Shown here: positions 6,619-63,056 of the stretch, piece by piece
Layout of the letters: each line of letters opens with the position of its first letter
Position numbering within the stretch: position 1 is the first letter of the stretch
Virus record (IMG/VR): IMGVR_UViG_3300023174_000045
Location: 62,001 to 126,000 of that record
Strand: one strand, 5' to 3'
DNA length: 64,000 nt
Program-made: the position numbers and the translations under genes
Notes under the pieces: model-generated
Databases searched by the model: none
Told to the model about the DNA's origin: nothing
Seen by the model: the letters and a program-made list of their open reading frames with translations, nothing else

Positions 6619-6857
6619 GCTCACTATATCTCAATTCAAGAACTTGGACTGTGTTTGACCCAAACAACGCAGACCACAGACGCTACTACTATGAGTTTAT
6701 CAAAACAAATACCTGGGGCCGCTGTCCTGTGAGGTTCGTGGTGCCGGATCGTCAAGGCGATTTGATCTCCATGATCCGTCGCAGTTTAATTGATTGGTAT
6801 GTGATGAACGAGTTTGATTCTAAAGGCAAACCTGGCAGGAAAAAAGTCAATGCCTGA
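6615..6857 (+). CDS. hypothetical protein
   Basis: Coupled ORF with GAGGA SD. Confidence 0.7.
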   Translation: MSSLYLNSRTWTVFDPNNADHRRYYYEFIKTNTWGRCPVRFVVPDRQGDLISMIRRSLIDWYVMNEFDSKGKPGRKKVNA

Positions 6858-16534: not shown

Positions 16535-16854
16535 TGAATTTACAACCAGCGGCCATTAGTAAACTGCAAGAACTTGTTGCTGAAGAAGGCAATCCCAACT
16601 TGATGTTGCGTGTGTTTGTGCAGGGCGGCGGATGTTCGGGATTTCAATATGGCTTTACATTTGACGAAGCACAAAACGAAGATGACTTTGACTTTGTTTA
16701 CGACTCAGTGAAAGTTGTAGTGGATGCCATGAGCATGCAATACTTACAAGACTCTGCAATTGATTACCGAGAAGATGCCATGGGCGCCAGCTTTGTGATC
16801 AACAATCCACAAGCAGTCAGCACCTGTGGATGTGGTTCAAGTTTTTCAGTCTAA
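16531..16854 (+). CDS. erpA: iron-sulfur cluster insertion protein (ErpA/IscA, HesB family)
   Basis: [20 protein letters not shown] ... TCGCGSSF. Confidence 0.92.
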
Positions 16855-19551
16855 ACAAACACACTGATCAGCCATGGTCATTTCAAAGTTGATCTTGTTG
16901 TAATCCACTGAGTAGAATCCATTGGCTTCCAATGTGACTGCGTGAGCAAATTGTGGCTGTTGCAACAAGTCTTGCGCCATGACTCCTGTCCATGTAATAT
17001 CACTCCAGACGTAATTAAAGTTGTAGATCTTTAATCCGTCATCTCGTGTTTGAATCAATTCAATATGATATTTCAGTCTACGATCTGAATAAGCAGAACC
17101 TGCTGAGCTTCCGCCGGCACTTGATGCGCCACTACCATTGCCAGCAGAACTGCCAGCTGATCCTACACCGCCGCTGTTTTTGTTATGCACAATCATGTTG
17201 TTTGCAACATACGTGTGATTGCCGTCAAGAACAAAATTGTAAAGCTGAGTGTCAGGATCTTCGGCATGTTCAGACATGGTGTTTATTGCAATTCCTATTC
17301 CGTCGGCAGTTTCAATTATGTCGCCAACTGACAATTTACCAATATTCCAATCTTGAAATAGTTCATATTTTGCTCGAGTTGCATCTGGGTTGGCTGATTT
17401 CCACTCACCATCTTTGCAATACACAGGATGATCATTGGTCATAAAAGCACTGCTTCCATTGATGGAAACAAGAGTTCTATTGCCCAGTACAGGTCTAATA
17501 TACGCAACAACTGTGTTTGAAACGCTGTCTTTGCCTAGTACTGTTTCTCCAATGCTGACATTTTCAATTGCTTTGCATGATCCATCGGCCATGGTTATTT
17601 GTGTGCCGGCTACAAAACAGCTAATACGCACACTGTCATATACCTTGGGCGGTGGTGGTGGCGCTGCTCTACGGTCCGACGGTCTTGATAATCTTCCAAA
17701 ATCATCAGTTTGTCCGGTGAAGTTTAATGCTGCACCACCAATCAACATTTGCCATGAATTATTGTAATATACATAGGTAGCTGTGGTTTGTTTCCAGGTA
17801 CCATTTACATAGACAAACGCATTCTTGACATCGTGCCAGGCACTGTCAACTGCATCATCTCTAATTTGAGTACCATACGCATCAAAAACTATTACAGCCG
17901 CACCATGCCGTGCTTGCAATTGACCTGCTGATGCTCCGGTGCCTGCCGATCCCACCAAAGAATAATATTGAGAATTTGCTCCAGCAGAAGCAATGCCAGT
18001 GGAATCAATTACCATGCCACCAATGGTAGCAGGTTCATTTCTGTAGCTAATGCCTACCGAGCCAGCTTGTGCATAACTGTCGCCCACACTGCTGTAACCA
18101 TTATTGCCGGCACCACCAGGTCCACCAGGTCCACCAGCACCACCTCCGCCACCGTCTTTGTAGAAGTCACCTTGATTTTGACCAACTTGGCCACTGCTAA
18201 TACCTCCCGCGGTTTGTCCACGCGGCCCGGGGGCATTTGATTCTGATCGACCAGTGGTGCTGTTGCCAGCACCACCACCACCTGCTCCGCCCACGGCCAC
18301 GGCCAACAATGTTTCATTTGTGGTTTTGGGATTCAGCACCAGTGTGGTGCAACCTCCAGAACCGCCACCGCCACCAGAACTACCTTGTGGCCCAGCCAGA
18401 CCACCTGTGGCACCTGACCAGCTTTTGCTGATTACCAGAGCAATACCTGCCGCAGGCAGTGTGGTGTCAGTAAAACTGGCTGTAAATGACAAAGTATGAT
18501 ACCCTTGGTTCACATAGACGTCTGTGACATAAGCAGTGGCGTATGAATCAGTGCCAGGAGTGGTGGCCACCACGGTGCCGTCAATGCTGACAGTGGCTGA
18601 GTTGGCAGCGGCCAGTTGTATTTGGTATATTCCATAATAGGGAAAATAGATATTGTTATAGGTACGAGAACACGATGCCGCTTTGATGTCTTGTTCCCAT
18701 ACCCCATGATCCACTATCAAATTACTGTAGGTTTGAAAAGAAGCGGCTGCTGGAGCAACTGGCGTATACAAAGGTGGACTGGCTGTGGTGGTCCTACTGT
18801 CAAATATTTGTCTTACCAGTCCACTACCACCCAATCCTGCGTTACCAGCAGCAGCTATGGTGAGCCCTACCCCAAAAGTTCCATAAGTTGCTCCAGGATT
18901 GGCTGTGGCAGTGATGCGTATGGTATGCTGTCCGGGTGTTATGGTACGTACAAAGTCCACGCCTGTGCTAACTTGATTGTTCCAACTGTCCAGACCAGAT
19001 TCAATGAATACTTCGCCATCAAGATACACTGTGGCCTGATAATAGGCAGCCAATGTAAACACATAGTTGATAGAATACTGAAACCACACTGTATATGATT
19101 GATCAAAGGTCAAAGTGTTGGCCTGACTGGTCACGCTGCCATTAAACGATGTGCCAGTATTCCATACACCAGTGTCATTTAAAAATTTTGACCATTTGGC
19201 AACATAGGTATTGCTGGCTCGAGGCAGTGTGGTACTACCTGGGCTGTTTGGCACAGCAGTGCGAGTGTTAAAAATGGGTGTTAGATAAGCATTTGCTGGT
19301 GTGCTGTTGACCCCACTGCTGCCAGCAGACCCCACTGTGACTTCAATGGTGTCCCCAGGAACTGCGGTAAACTCTGCTCGAACATAGCCCCCACCAGATC
19401 CTGTGCCTCCGCGATTCTGTCCGTCACTGCCGCCAGCGCCGCCGCCAGCGCCCCACAAGTAAGCAGTCACAGTGGGTGCGTAACCAATGGACGGAAAAGT
19501 TAAAAGTTGACGTGTTTGGGTATTGCCCAACGGTCTAGTTAATGTTGTCAT
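16846..19551 (-). CDS. Gly-rich tail fibre/virion protein with C-terminal Hint domain and S74 intramolecular chaperone domain
   Basis: LWGAGGG Gly-rich regions; CFVAGT...T.DHP...LYNF...HTY.AN..IVHN; YSDRRLK...GVMAQD...VDY. Confidence 0.8.
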
Positions 19552-31641: not shown

Positions 31642-31919
31642 GATATTTACTTTTAACTTACTACAAAAAGCCTGATGGCAAAATTGACGAAGTCATGGCC
31701 GTGGCCAAGAACTTGAAAATGCGTGATCATCAAACTTGCAATGTGATTTTGGACTTTAAGAAATTACAAGTGATCAAAGCCAACATGTCAGGCACAGACG
31801 TACTAAAAGATTTTGACCGAATTGCGGGTTATTATCATCAACACTATGCTTCTACCATTGAACGTTTGTTCAAAGAAAATGGCTACGAAGTTGAAGTAAA
31901 TCCCGAAGTTCAGGGATAA
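31638..31919 (+). CDS. hypothetical protein
   Basis: Coupled ORF. Confidence 0.7.
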   Translation: MRYLLLTYYKKPDGKIDEVMAVAKNLKMRDHQTCNVILDFKKLQVIKANMSGTDVLKDFDRIAGYYHQHYASTIERLFKENGYEVEVNPEVQG

Positions 31920-33904
31920 GTTAATTTTCTAAAGAAATCAACCAACTGCTCAATACTTTGTTGATTTTGTTCGGTATGATTTGAAAAGAATCCTTTTCTT
32001 GGTTTCAAGAAAAAAGCAATAGCAGGGTTTTCAAAATAAAATTTAAACACACTGTCAGCATGATACAATCCTGCTGACTTTGTCTTGACTGCGTCATTGA
32101 TCACAAAGCCCTGTTGATACAAGTCACTGTGTCGCACACGCACGTCTCCAAACACAATTTCATTTATTACCACAGTTTTGTCTCGAACAATCACGCCATT
32201 TTCCACAACAGTGTCATGCTGTGTTTTATTCTTCAAGTGAATTGACAGCATGTTGCGCTTTTTCAAGCCCGGTACTGTGATTTTTATAACTTGATTGTTT
32301 TCAACCACAACAGATTGTGCAACAATTTGTGAATTTATCATGATGTCAATTTCAGGCCAGTCGGTGCTACAAGTACCAGTTAATGAAATAGATATTGTCA
32401 TCGGCTCAGGATCAACTGGCAGTTGATAATTTTTTGACACAGTGTTGAACATGTCATTTTGCCATTCAACACTGTCACGGTTTTGCGGTGAAACAGATTT
32501 CAACGAAATCAGCAAACTAGACAATTCATACAGCACATTGTTTGCCGGCCATTTCAAACTTTCAATAACCTGCTGTGCCATGATACGTCTTCTGATACTT
32601 TCCACATAATCAACTGTGGTCACAAGGCTGGTCCATTGAGTGGCATTGTCTTGTTCTATTTTCCATATTTTGTTTTTTTCTTTGGCCAACGGCGTGTTGG
32701 GAAGAATTTGAAATCCACCGCCCAGGATCAATCCCACCAGGGTGCCATCAGCCACGTACTTGATGTATCGTTTGAACATGTCCAAGGTGTCCACAAAGTC
32801 CTGTTCAGTTTCTGTGGGATAGCCAATGATGATGTAAAAACTGCAAGTTATACCATGTTGACTGAATTGTTCCATTTCCAAGTCAAGGTCGTGGTTGGTA
32901 AAGCCTTTTTTCATGTGAGCTCTCACTGCATCACTGCCGGTTTCCACTCCAATGGTGAGATTGTGTGCGCCACTGGCCTTGATCAGTTGATAGTAATTTT
33001 TAGGCAGTCCTTGTTGTTTTCTAGATATCCATTGGCCGCCCCAGGTAAAGTCAGCGCCAGTGGCCTGTTTGTAATCAGCTAGAGTCTGCATCATGATCAT
33101 GAGTTCTTTGACATTGCCATTGATCAAACTGTCAGTGAAAAAGTAATTCTTTATGCCAGTCTGAGCATGCATGTCAATGATGTCTTGTGCAATCTTTGCC
33201 CCTGATCGAGACTTGAATTTTGGCCAAAAATGTGCAACGTCACAGAACGAACAACTTCTTACACAGCCGCGACTGCCTGTGATTTGCACAGTGATGCCAT
33301 CATAAAAATTGTCATAATCTTTCAATCTGTGATAATCGCTGTAGTCAGGTGGACCCAATGCGTCCAAGTCTTGAATTTGCTCCCCAGCACAATTAATGCC
33401 CGGGTAGGACATGTTTCCAGATAGTAAATTTTCCAAGGCCAATTCGCCTTCGCCGTAGATGGCCACATCAGCAAGGTGTTTGACTTGTTCAAAGAATTTT
33501 TCAGTTACACCATGGCCGCCCAACAGTATTCGGGATTCTGGCAATTTCTTTTTGACCACATATGGCAACAAATCACGACAAAATTTCCTACTGTCTTTGG
33601 TAAAAACACTTATGCCATACCATCGACTGTTGGTGTTGACCAAATCTCTGGACAGGTATTCCAGCACATTGTTGTACACTGCTTGGTCTTGTTGGGACAA
33701 TACCACAGCATCTTCCAACCAGTAGTTGATCAGTCTAGACATCAATTCAGCATCGTTGATGGCCAATTTGGTTTCTAAATTGTATTCTTTGGTAGTGACC
33801 CGATATCCTTGACTTTGCAAATGCCCTTTGAGCACCGCTGGCGCTGCCGGCGGCAGGTTGGTGGGAATGTAGGGTATGGAAACTACACAGAGATCAAAGG
33901 TCAT
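31910..33904 (-). CDS. B12-binding-domain radical SAM protein
   Basis: LLGG..GEGE; GSRGCVRSCSFC (CxxxCxxC); GVETGS; IIGYPTET. Confidence 0.88.
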   Translation of the reverse strand: MTFDLCVVSIPYIPTNLPPAAPAVLKGHLQSQGYRVTTKEYNLETKLAINDAELMSRLINYWLEDAVVLSQQDQAVYNNVLEYLSRDLVNTNSRWYGISVFTKDSRKFCRDLLPYVVKKKLPESRILLGGHGVTEKFFEQVKHLADVAIYGEGELALENLLSGNMSYPGINCAGEQIQDLDALGPPDYSDYHRLKDYDNFYDGITVQITGSRGCVRSCSFCDVAHFWPKFKSRSGAKIAQDIIDMHAQTGIKNYFFTDSLINGNVKELMIMMQTLADYKQATGADFTWGGQWISRKQQGLPKNYYQLIKASGAHNLTIGVETGSDAVRAHMKKGFTNHDLDLEMEQFSQHGITCSFYIIIGYPTETEQDFVDTLDMFKRYIKYVADGTLVGLILGGGFQILPNTPLAKEKNKIWKIEQDNATQWTSLVTTVDYVESIRRRIMAQQVIESLKWPANNVLYELSSLLISLKSVSPQNRDSVEWQNDMFNTVSKNYQLPVDPEPMTISISLTGTCSTDWPEIDIMINSQIVAQSVVVENNQVIKITVPGLKKRNMLSIHLKNKTQHDTVVENGVIVRDKTVVINEIVFGDVRVRHSDLYQQGFVINDAVKTKSAGLYHADSVFKFYFENPAIAFFLKPRKGFFSNHTEQNQQSIEQLVDFFRKLTYP

Positions 33905-39560: not shown

Positions 39561-40175
39561 ATGGAATTAACAATCAGTCAATTAAAACAAATGGTACCTG
39601 GCATACCCCATGCTGAGCATTGGTATGAAGCCTTGGACCAACTGTTGCCTGACTATGAAATCAACACACCCCATCGCATTGCTGCCTTCATAGCACAGTG
39701 CGCACATGAATCAGGCGGTTTTAAATTCATCAAAGAGAACTTGAACTACAAAGCAGAAAGTCTGCGCAAAATATTTGGCAAGTATTTTCCCACAGACGAA
39801 TTAGCACAGGCCTATGCCAAAAAACCTGAAATGATTGCCAACAGAATCTATGCCAACCGCATGGGCAATGGCGACGAACACTCTGGCGATGGATATCGCT
39901 ACTGTGGACGTGGACTTATCCAGTTAACTGGCCGGAGCAACTATGAAAACTTTGCTGCCAGTTTGGAAATCTCACCAGAAGAAGCTGCCGAATACTTGGC
40001 CACATTTGAAGGTGCCGCACAAAGCGCCTGCTGGTTCTGGGAAAGCAACAATCTAAATGCAGAAGCCGATGCTGGCGACATCAAGAAAATGACCAAGAAA
40101 ATCAATGGCGGTTTTATTGGATTAGAGGATCGTATCAAGCACTACGAACACGCATTACACATTATGGGAGCCTAA
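39561..40175 (+). CDS. GH19 endolysin
   Basis: RIAAFIAQCAHES, ENLNY, GRGLIQLTGR.NY, TKKINGG..GL.DR. Confidence 0.92.
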   Translation: MELTISQLKQMVPGIPHAEHWYEALDQLLPDYEINTPHRIAAFIAQCAHESGGFKFIKENLNYKAESLRKIFGKYFPTDELAQAYAKKPEMIANRIYANRMGNGDEHSGDGYRYCGRGLIQLTGRSNYENFAASLEISPEEAAEYLATFEGAAQSACWFWESNNLNAEADAGDIKKMTKKINGGFIGLEDRIKHYEHALHIMGA

Positions 40176-43599: not shown

Positions 43600-44373
43600 A
43601 TGACCGACTACTACGCCACACTAGGTGTGCCCCGAACTGCCACTGCTGACGAAATCAAACGGGCATTTCGTCGATTGGCCAGCCAGCATCATCCGGACAA
43701 AGGCGGCGATACTCAAAAGTTTCAGGCCATTCAAGAAGCCTATGCCACACTGGGCGACGAACAAAAACGTGCCGAATACAACAATCCCAGGCCACAGTTT
43801 TCAGGATTCAATGGCAGTGTCAACATCAATGACATATTCAACATGTTTGGGCATGGACACGGGTTTGCTCAACAGCCACGGCCACGCAGTCATGTGAGAA
43901 TGACCTTGACCATTACATTGAATGACGTGGCCACAGGTGGCAAACGCACTGTGAGCCTGGGCACAGCACAAGGCATAAGTGCTGTGGAAATTGAAATACC
44001 CATAGGCATCAATGACGGAGACAATGTGCATTATGAAGGCATCGGTCCCGGTGGCTCAGATCTTGTGGTACAGTATCGAGTTCAACCAGACCGAGTTTGG
44101 CAACGTCAGGATCTCAATTTAATTACTGAAACACGAGTGAGCATTTGGGATATAATATTGGGAACCGAATTGCACATTACCACAATTACCGGCAGTGTTT
44201 TGAGTGCCAATATACCTCCCAGAAGTCAACCCGGTGTGACCTTGAGACTGCGAGGAAGAGGATTGACCAACCGAAATGGCAACACTGGTGACATCATGGT
44301 GCGAGTGCAGGCCTTTGTGCCAGATTCCGTCGCACCCGAATTGCTGGCAGCTATTCAAGCACACCACAAATAA
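43600..44373 (+). CDS. DnaJ/CbpA-type chaperone
   Basis: J domain (YYATLGV, HPDKGG, AY.TL) plus DnaJ_C; no zinc finger. Confidence 0.92.
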
Positions 44374-44449
44374 ATATTTTGGCACAGTCAAGGTTGCACC
44401 CAATAACAAAATAGCATATAATAAACCATAGGACAACTCAAGGACCCAC

Positions 44450-46702
44450 ATGCAAAACAATCCCGAAATTGAACACATTGTAGATCAAGCAGTGAAAATT
44501 GCTCGAGACAAACATCACGAATATGTCATAACTGAACACTTGTTGTTGAGTCTGATCAGGCATGCACCGTTCCGTAAAACCTTGGACAATTTTGGTGTGG
44601 AAGTTGATCAAATGGATCAAGAGGTTGATGTGTATCTTGACAGTTTGAAAAACTTGGTCAAGCCCGGTGAAGAAGTGCAACCACGCAAAACACAAACCTT
44701 GGAACGCCTGTTCAATCGTGCCAATGTGCAGGTCATGTTCACAGGACGCAGAACACTGACCACCTTGGATTTGTACTTGAGCATCATGGCCGAAACCAAC
44801 AGCCATGCACACTACTTCTTGCTGAAATATGGCGTGAAGAAAACTGAGTTTTCAGAATTCTACGGCAAAAATTATCATGCCGGTGAAACCAAAATGAATC
44901 CAGTGCAGGCCAACGAAATACTCACTGAGTACTGCACCAACTTGACAGCCTTGGCACAAGCAGACAAACTGGAACCCTTGATCGGGCGTCAAACAGAACT
45001 GCACGAAATGATCACTGTGATGGCTCGACGCTTCAAGGCCAATGTGCTCATGGTAGGCGATCCTGGCGTAGGCAAGACCTGCATTGTGGACGGCTTGGCA
45101 CAGGAAATTGTGGCTGGACGTGTGCCCAAGTTCATACAAAATCATGAAGTATGGGGACTAGAAGTTGGAAGTTTGCTGGCAGGATCAAAGTACCGCGGGG
45201 AGTTTGAAGAAAAATTCAAGGCTGTGATTGCTGCCTTGGAAACCAAAAAAAACTGTATCCTGTTCATTGACGAAGCACACACCATGAAAGGTGCCGGTGC
45301 CGGAAGCCAAAGTTCATTAGACTTTGCCAACATGCTAAAGCCTGCAATCACCAAAGGCAACTTGAAAGTGATTGCGTCAACAACATGGGAAGAGTATTAC
45401 GAATCATTCGAAAAGGATCGTGCGTTGATGCGCAGGTTCTATCGTATTTCAATTGATGAGCCAGATACAGAAACCACAGAAAAGATTCTCATTGGCCTAA
45501 GCCCAAGACTGGAAAAGTTCCATGATGTGCTAATTGACACAGAAGCAATGATGGCTGCTGTGGAACTGGCCAATCGCTACATACACGATCGTAAAAATCC
45601 TGACAAAGCCATTGACTTGTTGGATGCAAGTTGCGCACGTGAACGTGTGAAAGATCAAGGTACCATCACAGTCACCAAAGAAATGATTCAAGCACAGGTG
45701 TCACGTGTGGCAGGTGTGCCTGTGGATCGCTTGCAAAATGAACGATCGGCAAAGATTGTGGATTTGGAAAGCAATATCAAACAGAAGTTATACGGACAGG
45801 ATAGTGCTGTGGATGCGGTGTTAGAACGTGTGTACATCAACTTTGCCGGCATTGGCAATGCCCGACGTCCTATCTCAAGTTTCTTGTTCTTAGGCCCAAC
45901 AGGTACAGGTAAAACTGAACTGGCCAAACTGTTGAGTGACAACTTGGAAATGAAACTGTTGCGATATGACATGAGTGAGTATCAGGAAAAGCACACAGTA
46001 TCAAGCCTGATTGGTGCGCCTCCTGGTTATGTGGGCTTTGAAGATGGCAACATAGGCGGTGGTAAACTGATCAGTGACATCAGCAAGAATCCCTATGCTA
46101 TCATCTTGTTTGACGAGATTGAAAAAGCACACAGTGATGTCACCAACATCCTGTTGCAAATGCTGGACGAAGGACACATTACGTCAGCCAATGGCAAACG
46201 AGTAGACGTCAAGAACTGCATCATTATCATGACGTCCAACTTGGGGGCTCAAGCCAATGATGCCAACAACATTGGCTTTGGTAGCCTGGAAAAGACCGGT
46301 GAAGAAGATCGTGCCATGAAAGAGTTCTTCCGTCCAGAACTGCGCAATCGTATTGATCGTATCTGCAAGTTCAACAAACTAGACACATTGGCCATCAAGA
46401 AAATTGTGGTGAAGTTTGTGGATGAACTCAAAGCCAGCATGACTGACAAGAACATTCGTCTAGTATTGACTGAGCCTGTGATTGACCACTTGGCTGACAA
46501 AGGCTACGACAGCAAAATGGGCGCACGTCCTTTATCACGCAAGATCGACGAGTTGATCCGTGTTCCACTCAGCAAAAAGATCTTGTTTGATCGACTAGAA
46601 AACTGCGTGATCACAGCAGTGATGGCAACGGATGTTGTGGAATTTGAAATTGAACTAGACAAAGTGAGCACGGTAAATGCCGACGGAATCATTGTTGTAT
46701 AA
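44450..46702 (+). CDS. clpA: ATP-dependent Clp protease ATP-binding subunit (ClpA-like)
   Basis: Clp N domain; GDPGVGKT, LFIDEAH; GPTGTGKTE, DMSEYQEKH, GAPPGYVG, FRPE..NR, GARPL. Confidence 0.92.
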   Translation: MQNNPEIEHIVDQAVKIARDKHHEYVITEHLLLSLIRHAPFRKTLDNFGVEVDQMDQEVDVYLDSLKNLVKPGEEVQPRKTQTLERLFNRANVQVMFTGRRTLTTLDLYLSIMAETNSHAHYFLLKYGVKKTEFSEFYGKNYHAGETKMNPVQANEILTEYCTNLTALAQADKLEPLIGRQTELHEMITVMARRFKANVLMVGDPGVGKTCIVDGLAQEIVAGRVPKFIQNHEVWGLEVGSLLAGSKYRGEFEEKFKAVIAALETKKNCILFIDEAHTMKGAGAGSQSSLDFANMLKPAITKGNLKVIASTTWEEYYESFEKDRALMRRFYRISIDEPDTETTEKILIGLSPRLEKFHDVLIDTEAMMAAVELANRYIHDRKNPDKAIDLLDASCARERVKDQGTITVTKEMIQAQVSRVAGVPVDRLQNERSAKIVDLESNIKQKLYGQDSAVDAVLERVYINFAGIGNARRPISSFLFLGPTGTGKTELAKLLSDNLEMKLLRYDMSEYQEKHTVSSLIGAPPGYVGFEDGNIGGGKLISDISKNPYAIILFDEIEKAHSDVTNILLQMLDEGHITSANGKRVDVKNCIIIMTSNLGAQANDANNIGFGSLEKTGEEDRAMKEFFRPELRNRIDRICKFNKLDTLAIKKIVVKFVDELKASMTDKNIRLVLTEPVIDHLADKGYDSKMGARPLSRKIDELIRVPLSKKILFDRLENCVITAVMATDVVEFEIELDKVSTVNADGIIVV

Positions 46703-48371: not shown

Positions 48372-49418
48372 ATGAAACAAGTTGTTATTATGCCCGGTGG
48401 CTTTCACCCTTTTCACGCAGGACACGCTGAGTTATATCAATCAGCGAAAAAAGCCTTTCCTGGCGCTGACGTGTATGTGGCTGCTACCAACGACACCAGC
48501 AACAGACCTTTCCCCTTTGCACTGAAAGAAAAACTGGCACAGTTGGCCGGAATCCCTGCAGGCCGATTTGTACAAGTCAAGTCACCGTTTGGTGCAGAAG
48601 AAATAACCAGCCGATACGATCCAGAAACCACACAGTTGATCTTTGTCAAGAGTGAAAAAAACAGCCGATCAGGTCCCAGCCCCGAAGGTCCTTTTCCAGC
48701 AGAGCCTGATCCTGCAACAGGCCAATTGCCCTTGGTCACTAGAGGAGCCAGAAAAGGCTTGCCTGTGAGTGATCGATTACAATATTATCAACCAGGTCAG
48801 CCAATGGCGCCCATGAGTCAACACTCTTATCTTGCTTATTTGCCCACTGTGGAATTTGGCCCTGGTATGACATCAGGGTCCGAAATACGCACAGCATGGC
48901 CAAAATTAAATGAAAAACGTAAAACTGCGCTGATAATGAGCTTGTATCCAAAGACACAAGCCAACCCCAAGTTAGCCGCCAATGTTGTGCAAATGCTGGA
49001 CAATGCCATGGGCACAGTGGACGAAGACATCAGCCGCAGAGGATTTTTACGTGGTGCAGGTGCTGCCGCTGGCATGGCTGCCGCAGGCGCTGTGGGTGCA
49101 AAAGAACTTGCCCGGCCAACAATCATAGCCATTGTACGAATTGGCGATCAGACAAAACAATTCAACCTTGGTACTAAATTTGATACTTCAAAACAAGCAG
49201 AAGATTTTGTTGCCAATTTTCTAGACAAACAAGGCATACAAGGATACACCATTGAAATACAACGTGGTTATACCAACGAAAATCAAGGCTGGGCTGCCAC
49301 ATATGAAGCAGACGGACTCACTGCCGGAACCGGTGTCACAGGTGGCATGCATGCCACATACCAAGATCGATACAATCAACCCACTACAGAAGACTATGTG
49401 GAAGAACGTCGGTCGTAA
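48372..49418 (+). CDS. cytidylyltransferase-like (HxGH) protein with C-terminal modules including an internal Tat-like signal
   Basis: MPGGFHPFHAGH, TSGSEIR; VDE-DISRRGFLRG. Confidence 0.7.
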   Translation: MKQVVIMPGGFHPFHAGHAELYQSAKKAFPGADVYVAATNDTSNRPFPFALKEKLAQLAGIPAGRFVQVKSPFGAEEITSRYDPETTQLIFVKSEKNSRSGPSPEGPFPAEPDPATGQLPLVTRGARKGLPVSDRLQYYQPGQPMAPMSQHSYLAYLPTVEFGPGMTSGSEIRTAWPKLNEKRKTALIMSLYPKTQANPKLAANVVQMLDNAMGTVDEDISRRGFLRGAGAAAGMAAAGAVGAKELARPTIIAIVRIGDQTKQFNLGTKFDTSKQAEDFVANFLDKQGIQGYTIEIQRGYTNENQGWAATYEADGLTAGTGVTGGMHATYQDRYNQPTTEDYVEERRS

Positions 49419-50405: not shown

Positions 50406-53400
50406 ATGAATATTCATGAGTTGGACTCTTACAATCTTGGCGACGCAGTAAAGTTTCACCGCCGTCTCAATCCCAGAATCTGGGGGCGAGACGAGCATTT
50501 ACTGCCAGAAGTGCGCAACAAACTGCTGGCCATTGCCGCAGACTTTCAAGAATTCTTGGGTGTTGATAATCTCAACGTTGAAGATATCACCATATCAGGC
50601 TCCAACGCAGCCTACTCCTACACAAAAAACTCAGACATTGATCTACACCTTGTTGTAGCAATGCCCGACAATCCTGTGTATCAGGAATTGTTTAATGCTA
50701 AAAAATATCAATACAACGACGAGCACAACATAAAAATTGGCGGTGCTGATGTGGAATTGTATGTGCAACCTGCGGATCAAGCACACCACAGTCAAGGCAT
50801 TTACTCAATCAAAGATTCGGAATGGCGTCAGATACCACAACGCAAACGTGCGCAGATAGATGATTCTTGTGTGCGTGACAAAACAGCTGACTTGGATGCT
50901 AGAATACACGCCGCAATCAAAAGTCGAAATTTAGAATCCATTAGCACACTGTGGGACAAGATCAAAGCCATGCGCAAAAGCGGACTTGAACAGCACGGTG
51001 AATTTGGTTGCGAAAATATCTCTTTCAAACTGTTGCGCAACAAGGGCTGTATTGGTGCGCTAAAAGATGCAATGATGTCCGAAAAAGATCGTGAACTCAG
51101 TTTGCGTGAAGCACCTGCAACGCCATTTCGTTATGGCTATGGTTCTGAAGTTGACGAAGCCAGTTTGGCAGACATGCGAGCTGCCTTTGCCGCAGATGCC
51201 AAACCACAAAAACAAGAAGTATTTCACAGTCATGATGAATACGAAAAAGTTCGAAAACAACGCGAAGCTGAACGCGAAGAAAAAATCAAACAAATAGCAA
51301 GAAAACCAATGAAGCCGTGGTCGGGAGGCTTGGAAGAAGGCCATCAAGGTCAACCTTACAGTAGTGAAGATGGTGTTGCTGCCAGTACCAAAATGTTCTG
51401 TGAAGACAATGATGACACCCTGGTACACGACTTTATTCAACACACTGCCATGGAACTGGGCATTGATCCCATGCCCGAAATTGTGTTGCACACTGATCCT
51501 GAATGGAGCACCAACAATCACAGTTTTGGCCGCTATGACCCCGAAAGCCACACACTCAACGTCAGCATGCCCAATCGTCACATCCTGGATGTGTTGCGTA
51601 CTGTGGCACATGAACTGGTACACTGCTCACAAAATCAACAGCATGGCAACTTGCCTCCAAATGCAGGCGAAACTGGTAGTCGCTGGGAAAATGATGCCAA
51701 TGCCCGAGCTGGCATAATCATGCGTGACTGGGCCAACACACATCCTGAACACTTTGAATTGCCCCCACTGGACGAAAGTGCGTCAGGATACATTCCTAAA
51801 AATAAAAAAGAAGCAGCCATGCCACAGTATGCCATGGCCTTGAGCGTGGATATCAAGCCAGGACAGACTGGCAAAGAAGCCAACAAGCTGGCATTGCAAA
51901 CAGGCCGCAATGGCGAGCCAGGCTTGTTGATGAAAACTGTGAACTTGCGTGAGTATAAGATGCCACAGCCCAGTCAAGGTCCTGGACGATATAGAGACTT
52001 GAATGAACCACTGGGTCCAGAGACTCCGCCCGAAATGCCAGATGGCACAATCAAAGTAGATGTATCGGACATGTACGACTGGTACAAACTGGGTCAAAAG
52101 ATATCAGACTTAGGCAGTATCAAACCTGGTGAACTAGGGTCAGGTCCTCCAAGTACAGTGTTTGCATTTGGCTCAGAAGATTTAGAAAACATGTACAGTC
52201 ATGAACTCACAAAACTGGGTTTAAAAACACACGACTTGGATGAGCCTGGCGAAGAAGACATTGACGAGAGTGCAAGCGATTACCAAATACACAACACTGA
52301 GAAACTGGATCGTGTGCTGGCCAAGTGTTGTGCTATGATTGAGCGAGGGCAACAAACGGATCCTGAGCGTTACGGTATGGTTGCTGCCTGTGTGATTGAT
52401 CCTGACAATAAACAGGTGTACGGCATCAACTTACCCGGCACTGATGGCACACGCAGACATGCTGAACGTGTGGCCATCAACAAGTACCGCAAGCAGCACG
52501 GTGACATTCCTAAAGGCAGCATTGTGGTCACGACACTGAGTCCCTGCAATAGCCCCATGGATGAACGTGCAGGCGAGAGTTGCAAAGACTTACTAAACAG
52601 TGCGGGCATACACAAAGTGTATTGTGGTTACATTGACCCCACACAGCACGATGATGAGGATGCTGACTTTGTTACAGGTGTCACACAAAATGACGACTTG
52701 TGGGACAGTTGCAAAGCATTTGCCGACACATTCTTACATGAAGATGACTTAGAAGAAGGAATAAAGTCTGCATTGGCCACTGCGGCTTTGGCAGGAACAA
52801 TGGCCATGGGGGCTCAAGCAAAAGCACCAACTATGGTTCAACAAATCGTCGAGCCTGGTGATACAATTTACAGCATAGCAAGACAAACTGGTGCAGATCC
52901 CAAAGAGATATACAAACTCAACAAGATGGATCGTAATACCAAGCTAGAGATAGGACAAAAGGTTCTGGTACCCGATTATGCTAGGCCTATTAGTAAAATG
53001 CCTGCCTCTGTAACACCCACAGTCAAACAAGAACCTGTAAAAGTGGCACCTCCTGCACCAACATTAAAAGATAAAATCTCATCAATGCTACCTAAATTTC
53101 CAGATGATGACGAAGGTGTTGTATTATTGAGCGACAATCCTGACGCAGAAGCCGCGCTACAAACTGCTGCCAAAGCCGCAGGACTTAAAGGTTCTGAACT
53201 GGCACAGTTCATGGCACAGACCCGACACGAAAGTGCAAACTTTGCACACATGAAAGAAATTGGCACTAAGAAAAAATTTGATCATTATGAAAAAAATCGT
53301 ACTCTAGCAAGACGATTAGGCAATACAGTCAAAGGTGATGGAGAAAGATTTAAAGGCCGTGGGTTCATTCAGTTGACCGGACGTGACAACTATACCAGAG

Positions 53401-53630
53401 CCAGCCAACAAATCTTTGGCGATGACCGACTGGTAAGAAATCCTGACTTGGCCAGCAAGTTGGATGTGGCAGCAAAAGTTGCACTGTGGTATTGGAAAAA
53501 TCAAGTTAGGCCCAAAGTCAATGATTTTAACAATACCACACAAGTTGTCAAAGCAATCAATGCTGACGAACCAATGAATGTTGTAAAACAACGTCACAAC
53601 AAATTCAAAGAATATTTGGCGGTGTTATGA
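50406..53630 (+). CDS. five-enzyme mosaic protein: nucleotidyltransferase, zincin, deaminase, LysM, GH19
   Basis: GSNA...SDIDLH; AHELVH..E; HAE...TLSPC...C; VEPGDTIYSIA...L.IGQKVLVP; FMAQT.HES...GRGFIQLTGRDNY. Confidence 0.85.
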   Translation: MNIHELDSYNLGDAVKFHRRLNPRIWGRDEHLLPEVRNKLLAIAADFQEFLGVDNLNVEDITISGSNAAYSYTKNSDIDLHLVVAMPDNPVYQELFNAKKYQYNDEHNIKIGGADVELYVQPADQAHHSQGIYSIKDSEWRQIPQRKRAQIDDSCVRDKTADLDARIHAAIKSRNLESISTLWDKIKAMRKSGLEQHGEFGCENISFKLLRNKGCIGALKDAMMSEKDRELSLREAPATPFRYGYGSEVDEASLADMRAAFAADAKPQKQEVFHSHDEYEKVRKQREAEREEKIKQIARKPMKPWSGGLEEGHQGQPYSSEDGVAASTKMFCEDNDDTLVHDFIQHTAMELGIDPMPEIVLHTDPEWSTNNHSFGRYDPESHTLNVSMPNRHILDVLRTVAHELVHCSQNQQHGNLPPNAGETGSRWENDANARAGIIMRDWANTHPEHFELPPLDESASGYIPKNKKEAAMPQYAMALSVDIKPGQTGKEANKLALQTGRNGEPGLLMKTVNLREYKMPQPSQGPGRYRDLNEPLGPETPPEMPDGTIKVDVSDMYDWYKLGQKISDLGSIKPGELGSGPPSTVFAFGSEDLENMYSHELTKLGLKTHDLDEPGEEDIDESASDYQIHNTEKLDRVLAKCCAMIERGQQTDPERYGMVAACVIDPDNKQVYGINLPGTDGTRRHAERVAINKYRKQHGDIPKGSIVVTTLSPCNSPMDERAGESCKDLLNSAGIHKVYCGYIDPTQHDDEDADFVTGVTQNDDLWDSCKAFADTFLHEDDLEEGIKSALATAALAGTMAMGAQAKAPTMVQQIVEPGDTIYSIARQTGADPKEIYKLNKMDRNTKLEIGQKVLVPDYARPISKMPASVTPTVKQEPVKVAPPAPTLKDKISSMLPKFPDDDEGVVLLSDNPDAEAALQTAAKAAGLKGSELAQFMAQTRHESANFAHMKEIGTKKKFDHYEKNRTLARRLGNTVKGDGERFKGRGFIQLTGRDNYTRASQQIFGDDRLVRNPDLASKLDVAAKVALWYWKNQVRPKVNDFNNTTQVVKAINADEPMNVVKQRHNKFKEYLAVL

Positions 53631-58681: not shown

Positions 58682-59610
58682 GCAACGACATTAGATCAAT
58701 ATTAGACCGACTGGCCACAGTGGAAGGTAAGTTGAGTCCAGCGCAACAAAAAGTACCACAACTGCCTGCGCTGTTCAAACCACGACACATTCGTGCCTTG
58801 GATTCAAAAACAGATCCTGCTCATCCCATGGACGGATACATGGTGGGTGATTCAATAGAGCCTAAAAAAACTGCGCTTGAAGAAGCCATGGCAGAAATTG
58901 AAGAAGACATGTTGAGCAAGGTCAAGAAAGACCTAACAACATATTTGGATCGACTGGAAAAGAAGGTACGTGTTGACCGTGACTTAAAAGACAAAGCTCA
59001 GGACGCTGTACAAAAAGGCAAGGCCGAAGAAGAGATTGAAGAGTTTGCACCACCAGGTGGTGATGACCGCGAACCCGACGAAGAAGAAATTCTACGACGC
59101 CTGGCTGCACAGTGGTGGAATGGAACGGAACAACAAATGGCCAAGGCACAAAACACATTGTCTGCAATGGGCTGGGAAATTGGTCAAGACGAAAGTGGTG
59201 ATGACGATGCTGGGGTATTCCTTGTACGTGCCGGCGATGTCAACGGTGATAGTTACATGGCGTTCAATCACAGTGACTTAGATTTAAACGAAGAAATTGA
59301 CACTGATCCTGCTGCCATTCACGGACCGTCAGATCCTGGAGACACTGAAGTAGCACACGCCGCTGAACTAGATGTAGACAACACACTCAGCGCACCACAA
59401 GCACCTGTGGCCACATTTGAAATGGCCGACGGTGCGGCACTGGAATGCTGGGGCGATGACAATTCGGGCTATGAAATTCGACATGGAGAACGTGCATTGC
59501 CCAGTCGCTTTAAGAGCCTGGATGACGCTGGCATGGCAGTGAAGTTGTATCAAGCTCGACAGCGAGCACAGCAACGCAACTCAGATGCAGATTACATAGA
59601 AGAACGATAA
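58678..59610 (+). CDS. acidic modular protein (putative internal head/scaffold-like)
   Basis: Many xxE linkers; ends DYIEER, resembling the DYVEERRS end of the 48372 protein. Confidence 0.6.
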   Translation: MSNDIRSILDRLATVEGKLSPAQQKVPQLPALFKPRHIRALDSKTDPAHPMDGYMVGDSIEPKKTALEEAMAEIEEDMLSKVKKDLTTYLDRLEKKVRVDRDLKDKAQDAVQKGKAEEEIEEFAPPGGDDREPDEEEILRRLAAQWWNGTEQQMAKAQNTLSAMGWEIGQDESGDDDAGVFLVRAGDVNGDSYMAFNHSDLDLNEEIDTDPAAIHGPSDPGDTEVAHAAELDVDNTLSAPQAPVATFEMADGAALECWGDDNSGYEIRHGERALPSRFKSLDDAGMAVKLYQARQRAQQRNSDADYIEER

Positions 59611-59612
59611 TC

Positions 59613-62600
59613 ATGATCACAAGCGATTTATTCACCAACAACTCATCTGCCTTGTTTGAAAACACAGGCCCAGTCACACACCGCGTTGGTCTCACAGTGA
59701 CTGACCCCAACCACCCCATGGTTTCAAAGCGTGGCGAAACTATTCAAAAGACTGTGCGTGTCAAAGGTGACGACCGTGAAAAAGCCATCAACGGTGCCAT
59801 TGCACACCTTCGCCGCAAAGGTTACAAAGTACATGACCATCACTATATTGGCACAGTGGATCAAGGTGTGTCAGAAGGTCAGTTGGAATTAAACACACCA
59901 GATCCTGTTGTAGTGGTACAAGATCAACAAGGTAAAATTCTAGATAAAATAAATTTATCAGTGGCTGCACAAAAATACAAATTGGGTCAACCACAAAACA
60001 TAAAGAATCAGTTGGCGCATCAAAATTATACCAAAATTGGTAGTTACACCATAGTATCTCCCATGAGCGGGCAGCCACAAGATCAAACAACCACTGGACA
60101 GAAAACTACGTTTGCCACGCCTGGCGTGGTGGAAGATATGCCACATGGTCAAGACATAAATGATCCGTTAGACCCTAGCTACGGTGGTAACCGCAATCGT
60201 TCAGTCAAGCAGAATATCCAAGCCCGTTTAGGTCACGATGAACGTGGTGATGCAAGAGAGCGAGCTGGTCAACCACGCAGTACTCATGCACGACACAAAC
60301 CACAACTGCCAGAAAGTTCAATGGATGACGATGCTATTTGGCGTCAATATGGACAGTATAACGCACAAGACTTGATGCAGGAATTTCCAAATCTAAATCC
60401 CAAGGATGCACAGACCATAGTAAATTACGCCGAGTATGGTTGGTCATCTTCCAATCCACAAAAATTTAGAAATGAAGTGGTACAGCGAGTTAAAATGGCC
60501 ATGGGTCAACAAGGTGTGAACGAAGTCAGCCTAGGTGACTATCGTAAAAAAGCACAACTAAGTCAAGCAGGTGCCAAGATAAACAAGTTCTTTGACCGTG
60601 ACGATCCTGCAGCGGTTGCCGCTGCTGATCAAACCATTGCCAAGCGAGAAAAGGGCCTGGCACGTGCTGATGCTAGAATCAAGCCATACACACCTCCTGC
60701 ACAAGATGCTGAAAAACACCAACGTGATTTAACCGCCAAGTATCCCAACATTGACGAATTAGTGGCCGCAGCCGAACAGCGCCGTGACCCCAATTACGAC
60801 TACGCCGAAGGTGATGCTTATTATCGTGGCCGCGAAGCTGAACAAAACTATCAAAAATTAAAACAAATCCAACGTGTGATTCAAGGCTTAAATGAATCTT
60901 GTGCCGCAGTAAAAAAAAATTATCTGTATGAAGGCCTAGACCGTGACAGCGTGAACACAGTCAAGCTGTGGGAAAGTGCTGGCCAACGCATTGTGGAAGC
61001 CCAACTCACAGTTGATCAAATCAATCAATTGTTCAAATCCGCAGAACAAGACGCTACTGCTGCTGGTGGCAACAGAACCATGGTTGGCAAGGGCAAAGAC
61101 GCTGCTGTAGCAGTCAACCGAGCCTGGGAAGATTTAAAGACCAAGGTACAAAATTCTGGTCCTATCAAGAGTGTGGATGCTGCCTATGATTCGGCAGCAG
61201 AAAAATTAAAACAAGCCACTGGTGGTGACCAGGGCGTGATGAAGTACGTGCAAAAGTATCGTGACTTTGCCAAGGCACATCCTGTGGCACAGAGTTTGAT
61301 TTACTCGGCCTTGATTGCTGCCGCAGGTATTTCAGGAGCTGGTGTAGGTGGGGCCGCTGCCTTAGGTCTGTTCAAACTTGTGGACAAACTGTTGCAAGGT
61401 GAAAAGTTCTCCAGTGCCGCCTACTCAGGTGCTAAGACTGGCGCAATGGCCTATGGGGCCAGCAAGGTTGCTGACTACTTTAGAGGACCACAAACACCGC
61501 AAGGTGGCGGTGGTCTTGATCCCAAGGATCCTGATGTTGCAGCATTCCGACGAGATGTAGCCGACATGCGTGGGTACGATAATTACATGACTAAAAATCC
61601 CACATCATCGTTGAGTCCAGAACAGTATGCGGCAAAAATAGGCAAAGCTTCTGCATTGACACCAGATGGTTCTGGATTGACATCGCAGGCCAGCATGATG
61701 AATAATATTGCCAGCAAAATGGGATTGCCACCCGGTGCTCACCAAGCAACATTCCAAGGCGGTGTACCAGTGACCATAGATGGCAAAGCTGTACCATTGA
61801 ATTTGTTGTCAGGAGATCAGCAAAGAAATATCGAAGCCGCTCGTGCTATGCGACAGGCTATGTCCGGATCACAGTCTCTTGCTCAGAAAGCGGCCGCTGC
61901 TGCCGCCGCAGCGGACAAAACTTATGAATCACTCAATGTTCATACCAGTCACAAATTAACTGATGCAGACTTGTATTTCATATTCAGTGCCGCCACACAA
62001 CTCAACGAAGGCATCTGGGACAGCATCAAAGGCACTGCCGGCAAGGCTGCTGGCAAGGCTGCTGACTGGGCCAAAACACAGGGTACCAATCTCACCACCA
62101 AAGTCACTGCTGACAAATTAAAGAGTGCATGGCTCAAGGCTGGTTCACCCACAGACAGTGACCAAGTTTACAATGTGATGACTCAGGCCGGGGTGGCACC
62201 ACAAATATTAGACACTGTGTACAAGACCATGGGCGTCCCCACGTTCAAAGAAAAAGCCCTAGCAAGACCAACAACACCTGCTTTTTCAAGCGCACCAATA
62301 CCTGCTGGACCAGCATCTAAATCAGCAGCAGCCGCTGGGTCAGCACCAGCGACTACAACGCCAGCAAGTCCTGAAGTCACGCCTAACGCCGCTACACCAG
62401 CAACAGCCGATGCCCCCAAGACAAAACAGTTGGGCACTGGTACTGGTCGTATCAATCCTGCCACTGGACGACCCTGGACTCCTAGCGAGCTCAAAGCCAA
62501 GTATGCGCAACCACAGTCAACAGCGCCCACACCAGACTCAGAGCCACCTGCACCAGAACTTACTTCGCCAGAGCCTGCTTTAAAATCTAGCCCAACCGCA

Positions 62601-63056
62601 CCGCAAAGCCCTGAAGAAATTAGAAAAGCCAAACAATCAGCTGCTGCTCTTGCTGCACAACAGGCCATGGGAGATGTTGCTTCACCAGCACCTGCACCTA
62701 CTGTGGCGTCTACCCCGGCTCCAGCATCATCTGCCGCGCCTTCGGGTCCTCCTGGATTCAATGCTGGCAACTTGGCACAACTTCCCGGTATGGCACAATA
62801 CATGCAACAAAAGCCGGCTGCGGCCAAACCTGCACCCAATTTTGCTCGAGGACCTGCTGCATATGGAAAGACCACAATGAATGTTGGACCAACTGCAACC
62901 AAACCAACAGCCACAGCAGCACCAGCTGGCAAAAAGCCCACTGCACAACAGCAACAAGAATATTATAAATCTTTGGGATTGGCAGAGTCTCTGACCTGGA
63001 GCCAAAATTTTGATCCTGGACGCAGTCTGTATCGTAGAATGAAACAGGATATTTAA
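59613..63056 (+). CDS. large modular protein with hydrophobic central segment and Pro/Ala-rich tail
   Basis: 1147 aa; QGVSE, QGVNE, GLNE, QLNE, GLAE linkers. Confidence 0.7.
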   Translation: MITSDLFTNNSSALFENTGPVTHRVGLTVTDPNHPMVSKRGETIQKTVRVKGDDREKAINGAIAHLRRKGYKVHDHHYIGTVDQGVSEGQLELNTPDPVVVVQDQQGKILDKINLSVAAQKYKLGQPQNIKNQLAHQNYTKIGSYTIVSPMSGQPQDQTTTGQKTTFATPGVVEDMPHGQDINDPLDPSYGGNRNRSVKQNIQARLGHDERGDARERAGQPRSTHARHKPQLPESSMDDDAIWRQYGQYNAQDLMQEFPNLNPKDAQTIVNYAEYGWSSSNPQKFRNEVVQRVKMAMGQQGVNEVSLGDYRKKAQLSQAGAKINKFFDRDDPAAVAAADQTIAKREKGLARADARIKPYTPPAQDAEKHQRDLTAKYPNIDELVAAAEQRRDPNYDYAEGDAYYRGREAEQNYQKLKQIQRVIQGLNESCAAVKKNYLYEGLDRDSVNTVKLWESAGQRIVEAQLTVDQINQLFKSAEQDATAAGGNRTMVGKGKDAAVAVNRAWEDLKTKVQNSGPIKSVDAAYDSAAEKLKQATGGDQGVMKYVQKYRDFAKAHPVAQSLIYSALIAAAGISGAGVGGAAALGLFKLVDKLLQGEKFSSAAYSGAKTGAMAYGASKVADYFRGPQTPQGGGGLDPKDPDVAAFRRDVADMRGYDNYMTKNPTSSLSPEQYAAKIGKASALTPDGSGLTSQASMMNNIASKMGLPPGAHQATFQGGVPVTIDGKAVPLNLLSGDQQRNIEAARAMRQAMSGSQSLAQKAAAAAAAADKTYESLNVHTSHKLTDADLYFIFSAATQLNEGIWDSIKGTAGKAAGKAADWAKTQGTNLTTKVTADKLKSAWLKAGSPTDSDQVYNVMTQAGVAPQILDTVYKTMGVPTFKEKALARPTTPAFSSAPIPAGPASKSAAAAGSAPATTTPASPEVTPNAATPATADAPKTKQLGTGTGRINPATGRPWTPSELKAKYAQPQSTAPTPDSEPPAPELTSPEPALKSSPTAPQSPEEIRKAKQSAAALAAQQAMGDVASPAPAPTVASTPAPASSAAPSGPPGFNAGNLAQLPGMAQYMQQKPAAAKPAPNFARGPAAYGKTTMNVGPTATKPTATAAPAGKKPTAQQQQEYYKSLGLAESLTWSQNFDPGRSLYRRMKQDI

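Follow-up and report, generated by a model that had tools for sequence, protein, structure and literature searches.

An internal segment with the sequence features of a twin-arginine (Tat) export signal is found in a modular protein of a huge uncultured phage, at the junction between a predicted nucleotidyltransferase and a small downstream domain, and the same arrangement recurs in many related phages. The protein is encoded by the ORF 48372..49418 (+, 348 aa) of the 64-kb window, that is, the whole stretch of DNA analyzed here, which is taken from the 225-kb contig IMGVR_UViG_3300023174_000045 (about positions 62,001-126,000 of it). The segment D219..A243 (DISRRGFLRGAGAAAGMAAAGAVGA, 49026..49100) directly follows the triplet V216-D217-E218 (49017..49025) and is itself directly followed by K244-E245. 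The original prediction of an internal Tat motif behind a putative cleavage site, placed at 49017-49100, is thus confirmed as an observation, and its coordinates cover exactly VDE plus the signal. Its interpretation, that cleavage after VDE would unmask a cryptic signal and allow a pre-folded, injected domain to be exported by the host Tat machinery, is only partly supported by our data.

The signal has the expected anatomy. The n-region D-I-S-R-R-G-F-L-R contains the twin arginines R222-R223 (49035..49040) within S221-R-R-G-F-L-R227, conforming to the consensus S/T-R-R-x-F-L-K. It is followed by the uncharged, Gly/Ala-rich h-region of 16 residues, G228-A243 (49053..49100), with a mean Kyte-Doolittle hydropathy (KD) of 1.27, ending in the c-region V-G-A243 (49092..49100); relatives have ALA/A, AQA/S or AQA/Q at the latter position (here and below, a slash marks a junction). 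The NCBIfam Tat model TIGR01409 scores 19.1 bits in the whole protein and 22.3-22.4 bits in the fragments, against a cutoff of 16.7, whereas Pfam PF10518 scores 17.7-18.3 bits, below its gathering score of 22.7, although some relatives pass it with 24.1 and 25 bits. The pattern [ST]RR.F[LI][KRQ], followed by at least 13 residues free of charged residues, His and Pro, occurs once in the six-frame translation of the window, the mean over 200 shuffles being 0.005. The antisense ORF 48836..49132 (-) is the reverse reading of the Gly/Ala stretch and was not treated as a gene.

The flanking regions are modular. The N-terminal part (48372..49007, aa 1-212) is an HxGH cytidylyltransferase-like domain, detected by PF01467 (22.5 bits against a cutoff of 21) and TIGR00125, with the motif H15-A-G-H18 in GGFHPFHAGH, where H12, H15, G17 and H18 are invariant. 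The predicted (AF2) fold extends to about residue 214, with block-mean pLDDT mostly 70-87 and low-confidence loops at 101-133, whereas pLDDT is below 50 for 215-249, which places the signal in an unstructured linker between two folded domains. The downstream folded domain is about 60 aa (K244-E303, 49101..49280), rather than the approximately 65 aa originally proposed, and ends with T-N-E303/N304. It has a predicted beta-beta-alpha-beta topology, with strands at 250-257 and 260-267, a helix at 273-286 and a strand at 292-299. This domain, the presumed exported cargo, has no recognizable function: it gave no Pfam, PHROG or NCBIfam hit, Foldseek against the PDB gave nothing below E = 0.18, and the ESM Atlas gave only unnamed viral clusters at 0.85 or less. 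It is followed by a conserved but disordered tail of 45 aa (N304-S348, 49281..49415), reading NQGWAATYE...EDYVEE/RRS, with block-mean pLDDT of 23-29 from residue 301.

More than 3600 homologues were found in metagenomes, on contigs up to about 360 kb, and architectures of 264-601 aa share the same N-domain with different module sets. In contrast, no cultured relative was found: tblastn of the protein against 50,697 phage records gave one weak hit to the N-domain of an uncultured 484-kb phage, and a neighboring 1074-aa protein matched isolates only domain by domain. As regards the phage lineage, the adjacent ClpA-like ATPase is about 40% identical to genes in the jumbo phages PA5oct, Atu_ph07 and Phosso; the neighborhood also includes a DnaJ-like protein. 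In addition, a module of the ORF 56105..57229 matches PBECO4-type "virion structural protein" genes, but those show no such junctions or signals.

Conservation of the signal was one of the conditions on which the original prediction was to stand or fall, and RR proved to be invariant in 139 of 139 unique contexts from relatives chosen without requiring RR. In 152 unique contexts, selected by a pattern that does require RR, F and L/I/W, G at +2 is observed in 147, F at +3 in 152 and L at +4 in 149. In the same set an aliphatic-x-Glu triplet directly precedes the signal almost everywhere, position -6 being V/I/M/L in 87%, -4 being E in 96%, and -3 being D or E in 99%. A cleavable Tat signal is normally located at the N-terminus of its precursor, a position that the present one, at residues 219-243 of 348, would take only after cleavage at E218. 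Of the 86 Tat-type signals counted in representatives, 57 are internal; both Tat-type and Sec-type signals occur internally, up to residue about 1277.

An internal translation start, at GTG 49017 or ATG 49008, could in principle yield a separate small precursor with an ordinary N-terminal Tat signal, since in this window V216 is encoded by GTG and M213 (ATG) lies three codons upstream. However, this reading is largely excluded. In relatives the V216 codon is GTG, GTT, CTT, ATT, TTA, ATA or GTA, M213 is Ile in many of them, and no Shine-Dalgarno-like sequence is conserved upstream, while the motif lies 204-398 codons into the ORF in 10 distinct relatives; Sec-type versions have no Met, Val or Leu start at the junction either. 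A word-based search for stand-alone homologues of the C-terminal piece returned only truncated or mis-started members of the same family. A profile search did find N-terminal versions, but they carry a leader of the form MRAxEF[VI]xE and belong to the same phage family.

In related phages the signal precedes different domains, including ones that act in the cell envelope. A TolA/TonB C-terminal domain follows it in the relative L017 (tolA_full, E = 7.8e-13; tonB_Cterm, 34.1 bits against 27.1) and in the relatives P0273 and P0297 (TonB_2, E = 1e-11 and 2e-21), and LysM follows it in P0275. Pfam annotated almost nothing in the long downstream parts of the relatives L012, L050, L060, P0195 and others, so that cytoplasmic enzymes could not be shown to follow the signal. 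Moreover, Tat-type and Sec-type signals are interchanged: the same small domain sits behind Sec-type signals of the form V-x-E/GWKSK-IAGAALAAANLLGS-PAQA/AEEP in dozens of relatives, and LysM sits behind a Sec-like signal in this window and behind a Tat signal in P0275 and P0284. The companion case in this window (52749..52820, +) belongs to the neighboring 1074-aa ORF (50406..53630), where L782-E-E784 is directly followed by an internal Sec/SAR-like segment, GIKSALATAALAGTMAMGAQA805, and then K, between the cytoplasmic-type enzyme domains and LysM + GH19. The Tat-type h-regions are less hydrophobic than the Sec-type ones of the family (KD 1.05 against 1.36, p = 3e-10), as in real signals.

These observations bear on the possibility that the segment is not used for export, being instead a flexible Gly/Ala linker, a membrane-insertion segment of ejected proteins, or a relic carried along when an exported gene was fused behind the nucleotidyltransferase by module shuffling. 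The family is indeed highly mosaic, with in-frame deletions and insertions of modules, the structural model sees only a disordered linker, and the small domain has no recognizable function. Nevertheless, we consider this explanation unlikely, since a relic or linker would not keep RR, G, F and L invariant or nearly so, or a small-x-Ala c-region, while the upstream and downstream domains change completely; nor would it be interchangeable with a Sec-type signal in front of the same domains, or sit in front of TolA/TonB-C and LysM domains.

The junction triplet is a candidate Glu-specific cleavage site (P3-P1). In 149 representative relatives GVAE was observed 99 times against 1.5 expected and V.E[GDN] 220 times against 45, whereas the Asp version [VIL].D[GDN] is depleted, 84 against 131. 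This matches the proteases of T4 and giant phages, which cut after Glu (PMC5694885), with T4 gp21 acting at L/I-x-E, SPN3US at A-x-E and phiKZ at S/A/G-x-E; Asp at the T4 site blocks processing (PMC9026906). In relatives of the P0025 type the protein reads ...VAE/NQGW..., with the tail directly after the nucleotidyltransferase, and the cassette DISRR...TNE is therefore an insert bounded by x-x-E on both sides. The occurrence of the NQGW tail both with and without an upstream signal is easier to explain if the modules are separated. At the same time, all these signals share ancestry, so the fixed spacing between V-x-E and the signal could partly reflect descent rather than selection, and V-x-E could be a conserved linker rather than a cleavage site. 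No protease that could be assigned to this role was found in the 64-kb window, where the ORF 3067..3879 is a DD-carboxypeptidase and not a maturation protease.

The leader of the N-terminal versions, MRAQEFVDE followed by DLTRRGFL, and that of neighboring genes, MRAQEFVAE/G, resemble the T4 capsid-targeting sequence (CTS) MKTYQEFIAE/A, and, as in the T4 internal proteins, the cargo is hypervariable. However, the protein considered here begins with MKQVVIMPGGFHPFHAGH, with the HxGH motif at the very N-terminus, and so lacks a CTS-like leader. T4 internal proteins are single small proteins, not multi-module chains, and none is known to carry an export signal; for the phage family described here, cleavage and packaging remain suppositions from sequence.

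Taken together, we propose that the segment is a functional Tat-type export signal placed at a junction between modules of a modular ("polyvalent") protein of a huge phage with a presumed Gram-negative host. In this view, the polyprotein would be cut after [V/I/L/M]-x-Glu by a Glu-specific protease with a T4 gp21-like preference, most likely the phage's own, here at V-D-E218/D219 and T-N-E303/N304, leaving D-I-S-R-R-G-F-L at a new N-terminus. The host TatABC system would then export the 60-aa domain to the periplasm and signal peptidase I would release it after V-G-A243, whereas the nucleotidyltransferase would stay in the cytoplasm. The sequence analysis establishes the anatomy of the signal, its strict conservation and internal position, the lack of a conserved internal start, the interchange with Sec-type signals, the periplasmic nature of some cargoes and the enrichment of V-x-E junctions; in the absence of any experiment, export itself, its dependence on Tat, both cleavages, the protease and the timing are inferred. 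The scheme as a whole seems to us about as likely as not: use of the signal for export is likely, its prior release by cleavage at VDE is plausible, with even chances, and the small domain, being found with Sec-type signals as well, has no obvious need for Tat.

The main rival is the use of the signal without upstream cleavage, as in Class V Tat substrates such as FecR, where an internal Tat signal functions behind a folded cytoplasmic domain without unmasking and is followed by a domain destined for the trans side (Bruser and Sanders 2026, PMC13673990); in the light of these cases, the word "cryptic" is too strong. The full-length protein would then be made in the infected cell, the nucleotidyltransferase would remain on the cytoplasmic side and everything downstream would be moved across, after which signal peptidase I may release it or the weak h-region may act as a transient anchor. 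The predicted architecture, with residues 1-214 folded, 215-249 flexible and 250-299 folded, agrees with this possibility, as do the lack of a CTS-like leader and of a protease in the window. On the other hand, in the known Class IV (Streptomyces Rieske protein) and Class V cases the signal is uncleaved and serves as a membrane anchor, whereas the weakly hydrophobic Gly/Ala h-region and the recurrent small-x-Ala site (VGA, ALA or AQA) argue, as far as sequence alone can tell, against a stable anchor. There is no homology to FecR or Rieske proteins, no FecR family hit being obtained in Pfam or NCBIfam, and the context here is a modular and shuffled phage protein with [VILM]-x-E directly before the signal. 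In relatives up to about 770 aa of mixed modules follow the signal (L060), and some of these modules, such as the NQGW tail, also occur in proteins with no signal at all. Finally, this reading does not explain the near-invariant [VILM]-x-E-D in front of the signal or the family-wide V-x-E enrichment with Asp depletion. We therefore regard it as possible, but less likely than release by cleavage.

Delivery by injection, as assumed in the original prediction, is speculative. In the most far-reaching version, huge phages would package modular polyproteins into the capsid, the prohead protease would cut them after [VILM]-x-Glu into separate modules, some starting with an unmasked Tat or Sec signal, and after injection into the next host these ready-made pieces, such as TolA/TonB-like domains, LysM-lysozyme and the small beta-beta-alpha-beta domain, would be re-exported to the periplasm by the host's own translocases before any phage gene is expressed, while other modules would act in the cytoplasm. 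The evidence does not exclude this scenario, but we consider it unlikely. The suggested roles in superinfection exclusion or envelope remodeling are hinted at only by the TolA/TonB-C and LysM domains in relatives.

Many unrelated enzymatic domains within one polypeptide are characteristic of the polyvalent proteins of phages and conjugative elements (Iyer et al. 2017, PMC5512222), and the present family conforms to this theme, with neighboring ORFs carrying nucleotidyltransferase, an HExxH peptidase-like motif, deaminase, LysM and lysozyme-type GH19 domains, and ParB with GNAT. However, that survey contains no mention of signal peptides, transmembrane segments or the periplasm, and internal Sec/Tat signals and V-x-E junctions are not part of the described theme. 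Export signals embedded in longer precursors, and used after or together with proteolytic processing to send one part across a membrane, occur in polyproteins of eukaryotic RNA viruses and in bipartite chloroplast transit peptides, which expose a thylakoid Tat signal after stromal cleavage, but these act in a different domain of life, with different machinery and co-translational ER targeting; we know of no bacterial or phage precedent, and none was found in the literature searched. SAR (signal-arrest-release) endolysins also have Gly/Ala/Ser-rich, weakly hydrophobic segments in front of a muralytic domain, which is relevant to the neighboring 1074-aa protein, but SAR domains are N-terminal and Sec-dependent, whereas there the segment lies about 785 aa into the protein, and the signal of the 348-aa protein carries a canonical twin-arginine motif.

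Internal Tat signals are a very recent and rare category, represented by FecR and the actinobacterial Rieske proteins, and the papers searched do not describe export signals inside phage polyvalent proteins. Here a canonical, cleavable-looking Tat signal and its Sec-type counterpart recur at module junctions in many huge-phage proteins, preceded almost everywhere by a Glu-ending triplet of the kind cut by T4-like maturation proteases. If these signals are used, phages send defined pieces of multi-domain proteins to two compartments from a single gene, and V-x-E junctions, MRAxEF leaders and DY[VIL][DE]E ends would constitute a sequence "grammar" for parsing the large unannotated proteins of huge phages. 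It would also point to periplasmic phage effectors, TolA/TonB-like and LysM, that could act in entry, superinfection exclusion or envelope remodeling.

The open reading frame at 48372..49418 (+) encodes a protein of 348 aa, whose residues 1-212 form an HxGH cytidylyltransferase-like nucleotidyltransferase domain (PF01467, 22.5 bits against a cutoff of 21; also matched by TIGR00125). From position 49017 the protein reads V216-D-E218, followed by D219-I-S-R-R-G-F-L-R-G-A-G-A-A-A-G-M-A-A-A-G-A-V-G-A243, with its Gly/Ala stretch, and then K-E-L-A-R-P. The original prediction, that a twin-arginine (Tat) signal lies inside this protein directly behind V-D-E, was exact in both coordinates and residues, and the observation itself is confirmed. 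With the NCBIfam Tat-signal model the segment scored 19.1 bits in the whole protein and 22.3-22.4 bits in the fragments, against a cutoff of 16.7, and with the Pfam model it scored 17.7-18.3 bits, below the gathering score of 22.7. A pattern made of the Tat consensus plus at least 13 residues free of charged residues, His and Pro occurs once in the six-frame translation of the window, whereas the mean over 200 shuffles is 0.005. The AlphaFold2 model, built with 32 homologues, predicts a folded N-terminal domain (1-214), a low-confidence linker (215-249, pLDDT below 50) that contains the signal, a small beta-beta-alpha-beta domain (strands 250-257 and 260-267, helix 273-286, strand 292-299), and a disordered tail.

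The window is part of a 225-kb IMG/VR contig and carries tail fibre and baseplate genes, a clamp loader, PhoH, a GH19 endolysin block, a DnaJ-like and a ClpA-like gene and, from about 48 kb onward, a run of + strand genes for multi-domain proteins. The endolysin block, at 39561..40175 with flanking membrane-protein ORFs up to about 42400, is a separate, ordinary lysis block, in which a 204-aa GH19 endolysin is followed by small ORFs with transmembrane segments. The DnaJ-like J-domain protein and a 750-aa ClpA/ClpB-like double AAA+ ATPase (43600..46702) lie directly upstream of the multi-domain protein block, and the ATPase is about 40% identical to genes of the jumbo phages PA5oct, Atu_ph07 and Phosso; a link to unfolding or processing of the polyproteins is no more than a possibility. 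In addition, a 901-aa ORF at 16846..19551 (-) has a Hint (intein-like) domain at aa 644-719, and its C-terminal part matches a PHROG annotated as a virion structural protein. Auxiliary enzymes are encoded at 3067..3879, 6814..8214 and 31910..33904 (-): an S11 D-Ala-D-Ala carboxypeptidase, an amidase-family enzyme (PF01425, E 1.5e-85) and a B12-binding radical SAM protein. The 348-aa protein has no close counterpart in 50,697 deposited phage genomes, but more than 3600 relatives were found in metagenomes, on contigs up to about 360 kb. A Gram-negative host is likely, judging from the TolA/TonB-type domains in relatives.

In the best 120 homologues the stretch [V/M/L/I]-x-E-D-[I/L/M]-[S/T/N]-R-R-G-F-L-[R/K/Q]-G, the Gly/Ala run and a small-x-Ala end are kept. 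In 152 unique contexts from all proteins fetched, position -6 is V/I/M/L in 87%, -4 is E in 96%, -3 is D or E in 99%, -2 is aliphatic in 99%, and +2 is G in 147. However, this set was picked by a pattern requiring RR, F and L/I/W, and thus those positions are not independent tests. When contexts were picked without requiring RR, it was still present in 139 of 139. An internal translation start is largely excluded: in the DNA of 10 distinct relatives the motif lies 204-398 codons into the reading frame, the codon matching V216 is GTG, GTT, CTT, ATT, TTA, ATA or GTA, the upstream Met213 is Ile in many relatives, and no Shine-Dalgarno-like sequence is conserved. Thus neither lack of RR conservation nor an internal start, both of which had been set beforehand as grounds for abandoning the original prediction, was observed.

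The family is modular. Some relatives (P0025 and others) read G-T-E-V-A-E/N-Q-G-W-A-A-T-Y-E, where the slash marks the junction, and represent the same protein without the cassette, whereas in the protein considered here the cassette from D-I-S-R-R to Y-T-N-E is inserted between V-D-E and N-Q-G-W. Further modules are added or deleted in relatives, and each ends in x-x-E: I-D-E/R, L-D-E/Q, D-Y-V-E-E/D. In 149 representative relatives (no more than 50% identity), GVAE occurs 99 times against 1.5 expected and V.E[GDN] occurs 220 times against 45, whereas [VIL].D[GDN] is depleted (84 against 131) and the Gln version is at expectation. About half of these proteins were selected with a profile that includes V-D-E-D, and this selection accounts for roughly 100 of the 220 V.E[GDN] counts, but it accounts neither for the GVAE excess nor for the Asp depletion. 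The maturation proteases of T4, phiKZ, 201phi2-1 and SPN3US all cut after Glu at x-X-E motifs (PMC5694885), and in T4 Asp at the cleavage position blocks processing (PMC9026906). Moreover, proteins of this block and their relatives end with D-Y-[VIL]-[DE]-E followed by 1-5 residues (EDYVEERRS at 49389..49415 and ADYIEER at 59581..59607; PDYIEEGRKK and VDYLEEK in relatives). The same motif marks internal junctions, and it may be a C-terminal processing or docking motif.

A profile of the cassette searched against 1.84 billion representatives gave 172 hits. The same Tat-type signal sits in these at positions from the N-terminus to beyond residue 870, in proteins up to 1146 aa, in front of many different sequences. 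Where the following domain can be named, it is an envelope domain: a TolA/TonB C-terminal domain in the relatives L017 (2389..3063), P0273 and P0297, and LysM in the relative P0275. The small domain that follows the Tat signal here is preceded, in dozens of relatives, by a Sec-type signal, V-x-E/G-W-K-S-K-I-A-G-A-A-L-A-A-A-N-L-L-G-S-P-A-Q-A/A-E-E-P, and this signal is also internal, at positions from 14 to 1277. LysM shows the same interchange, since it follows a Tat signal in P0275 and in another relative, P0284, but a Sec/SAR-like internal signal without RR in the neighbouring 1074-aa protein (ORF 50406..53630). There, at 52749..52820, the sequence reads L-E-E, GIKSALATAALAGTMAMGAQA, K, and separates cytoplasmic-type domains (NTase, HExxH, dCMP deaminase) from LysM and GH19; the latter is a second copy of GH19 in the window, 31% identical over 148 aa to that of the lysis block. 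Tat-type h-regions are less hydrophobic than the Sec-type ones in the same family (mean KD 1.05 against 1.36, p = 3e-10), which is the difference known for genuine signals. A linker or a relic would not show these properties. A 27-residue Gly/Ala-rich hydrophobic segment (SLIYSALIAAAGISGAGVGGAAALGLF, 61293..61373) in the middle of a 1147-aa protein (ORF 59613..63056) with no Pfam or PHROG hits has no V-x-E or RR in front of it.

Of the 86 Tat-type signals counted, 23 lie within the first 20 residues, and these read M-R-A-Q-E-F-V-D-E followed by D-L-T-R-R-G-F-L. The nine-residue leader also starts proteins without a signal in this window, with MRAQEFVAE/GK at 57226, MRAHEF at 53627 and MKIRQIVEAAE at 54931, and a gene of the same block at 56105 starts with MNLYDLFNEE. 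These short leaders and the N-terminal consensus of the family, M-[R/K/N]-[I/A/L]-x-[E/D]-[F/L/I]-[I/F/V]-x-E, resemble the T4 capsid-targeting sequence MKTYQEFIAE, which is removed by gp21 after the final Glu. However, this is a resemblance only, and the 348-aa protein starts directly with its catalytic motif and has no such leader.

The closest known mechanism is the internal Tat signal of Class IV and V substrates, and the closest known context is the polyvalent proteins of phages. The paper defining the latter contains no mention of signal peptides, transmembrane segments or the periplasm, and neither does the jumbo-phage survey; literature searches combining twin-arginine or internal signals with phages, jumbo or huge phages found nothing relevant. 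We regard the internal Tat signal in this modular phage protein as a variant of these known kinds, and not as a member of the FecR family.

The sequence anatomy and the comparative evidence are what the analysis itself establishes, whereas export, cleavage at either end of the signal, and the place and time of processing are all inferred. The interpretation accompanying the original prediction, that cleavage after V-D-E would unmask the signal so that a domain injected into the cytoplasm could be exported to the periplasm, is thus supported only in part. As to how the signal is presented, the better-supported reading, although at no more than even confidence, is endoproteolytic separation of modules after [VILM]-x-Glu, which would leave D-I-S-R-R at a new N-terminus; this short n-region is comparable to that of E. 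coli SufI. The main rival, which seems less likely, is direct use of the internal signal as in FecR, a Class V Tat substrate. It is disfavored by the weak h-region with a cleavage-type c-region, by the long mixed module chains behind the signal in relatives, and by the occurrence of the same modules with and without an upstream signal. That processing happens in the capsid, with export after injection, is a doubtful possibility which no data here decide, and the Tat signals at N-termini would be active on synthesis, which fits export in the producing cell just as well. Overall, it is likely that the segment is used by the host Tat system to send the 60-aa domain to the periplasm, with signal peptidase I cutting after V-G-A243, and the TolA/TonB C-terminal-like domains found behind the same Tat signal in relatives are candidate periplasmic mimics of host Tol/Ton components.
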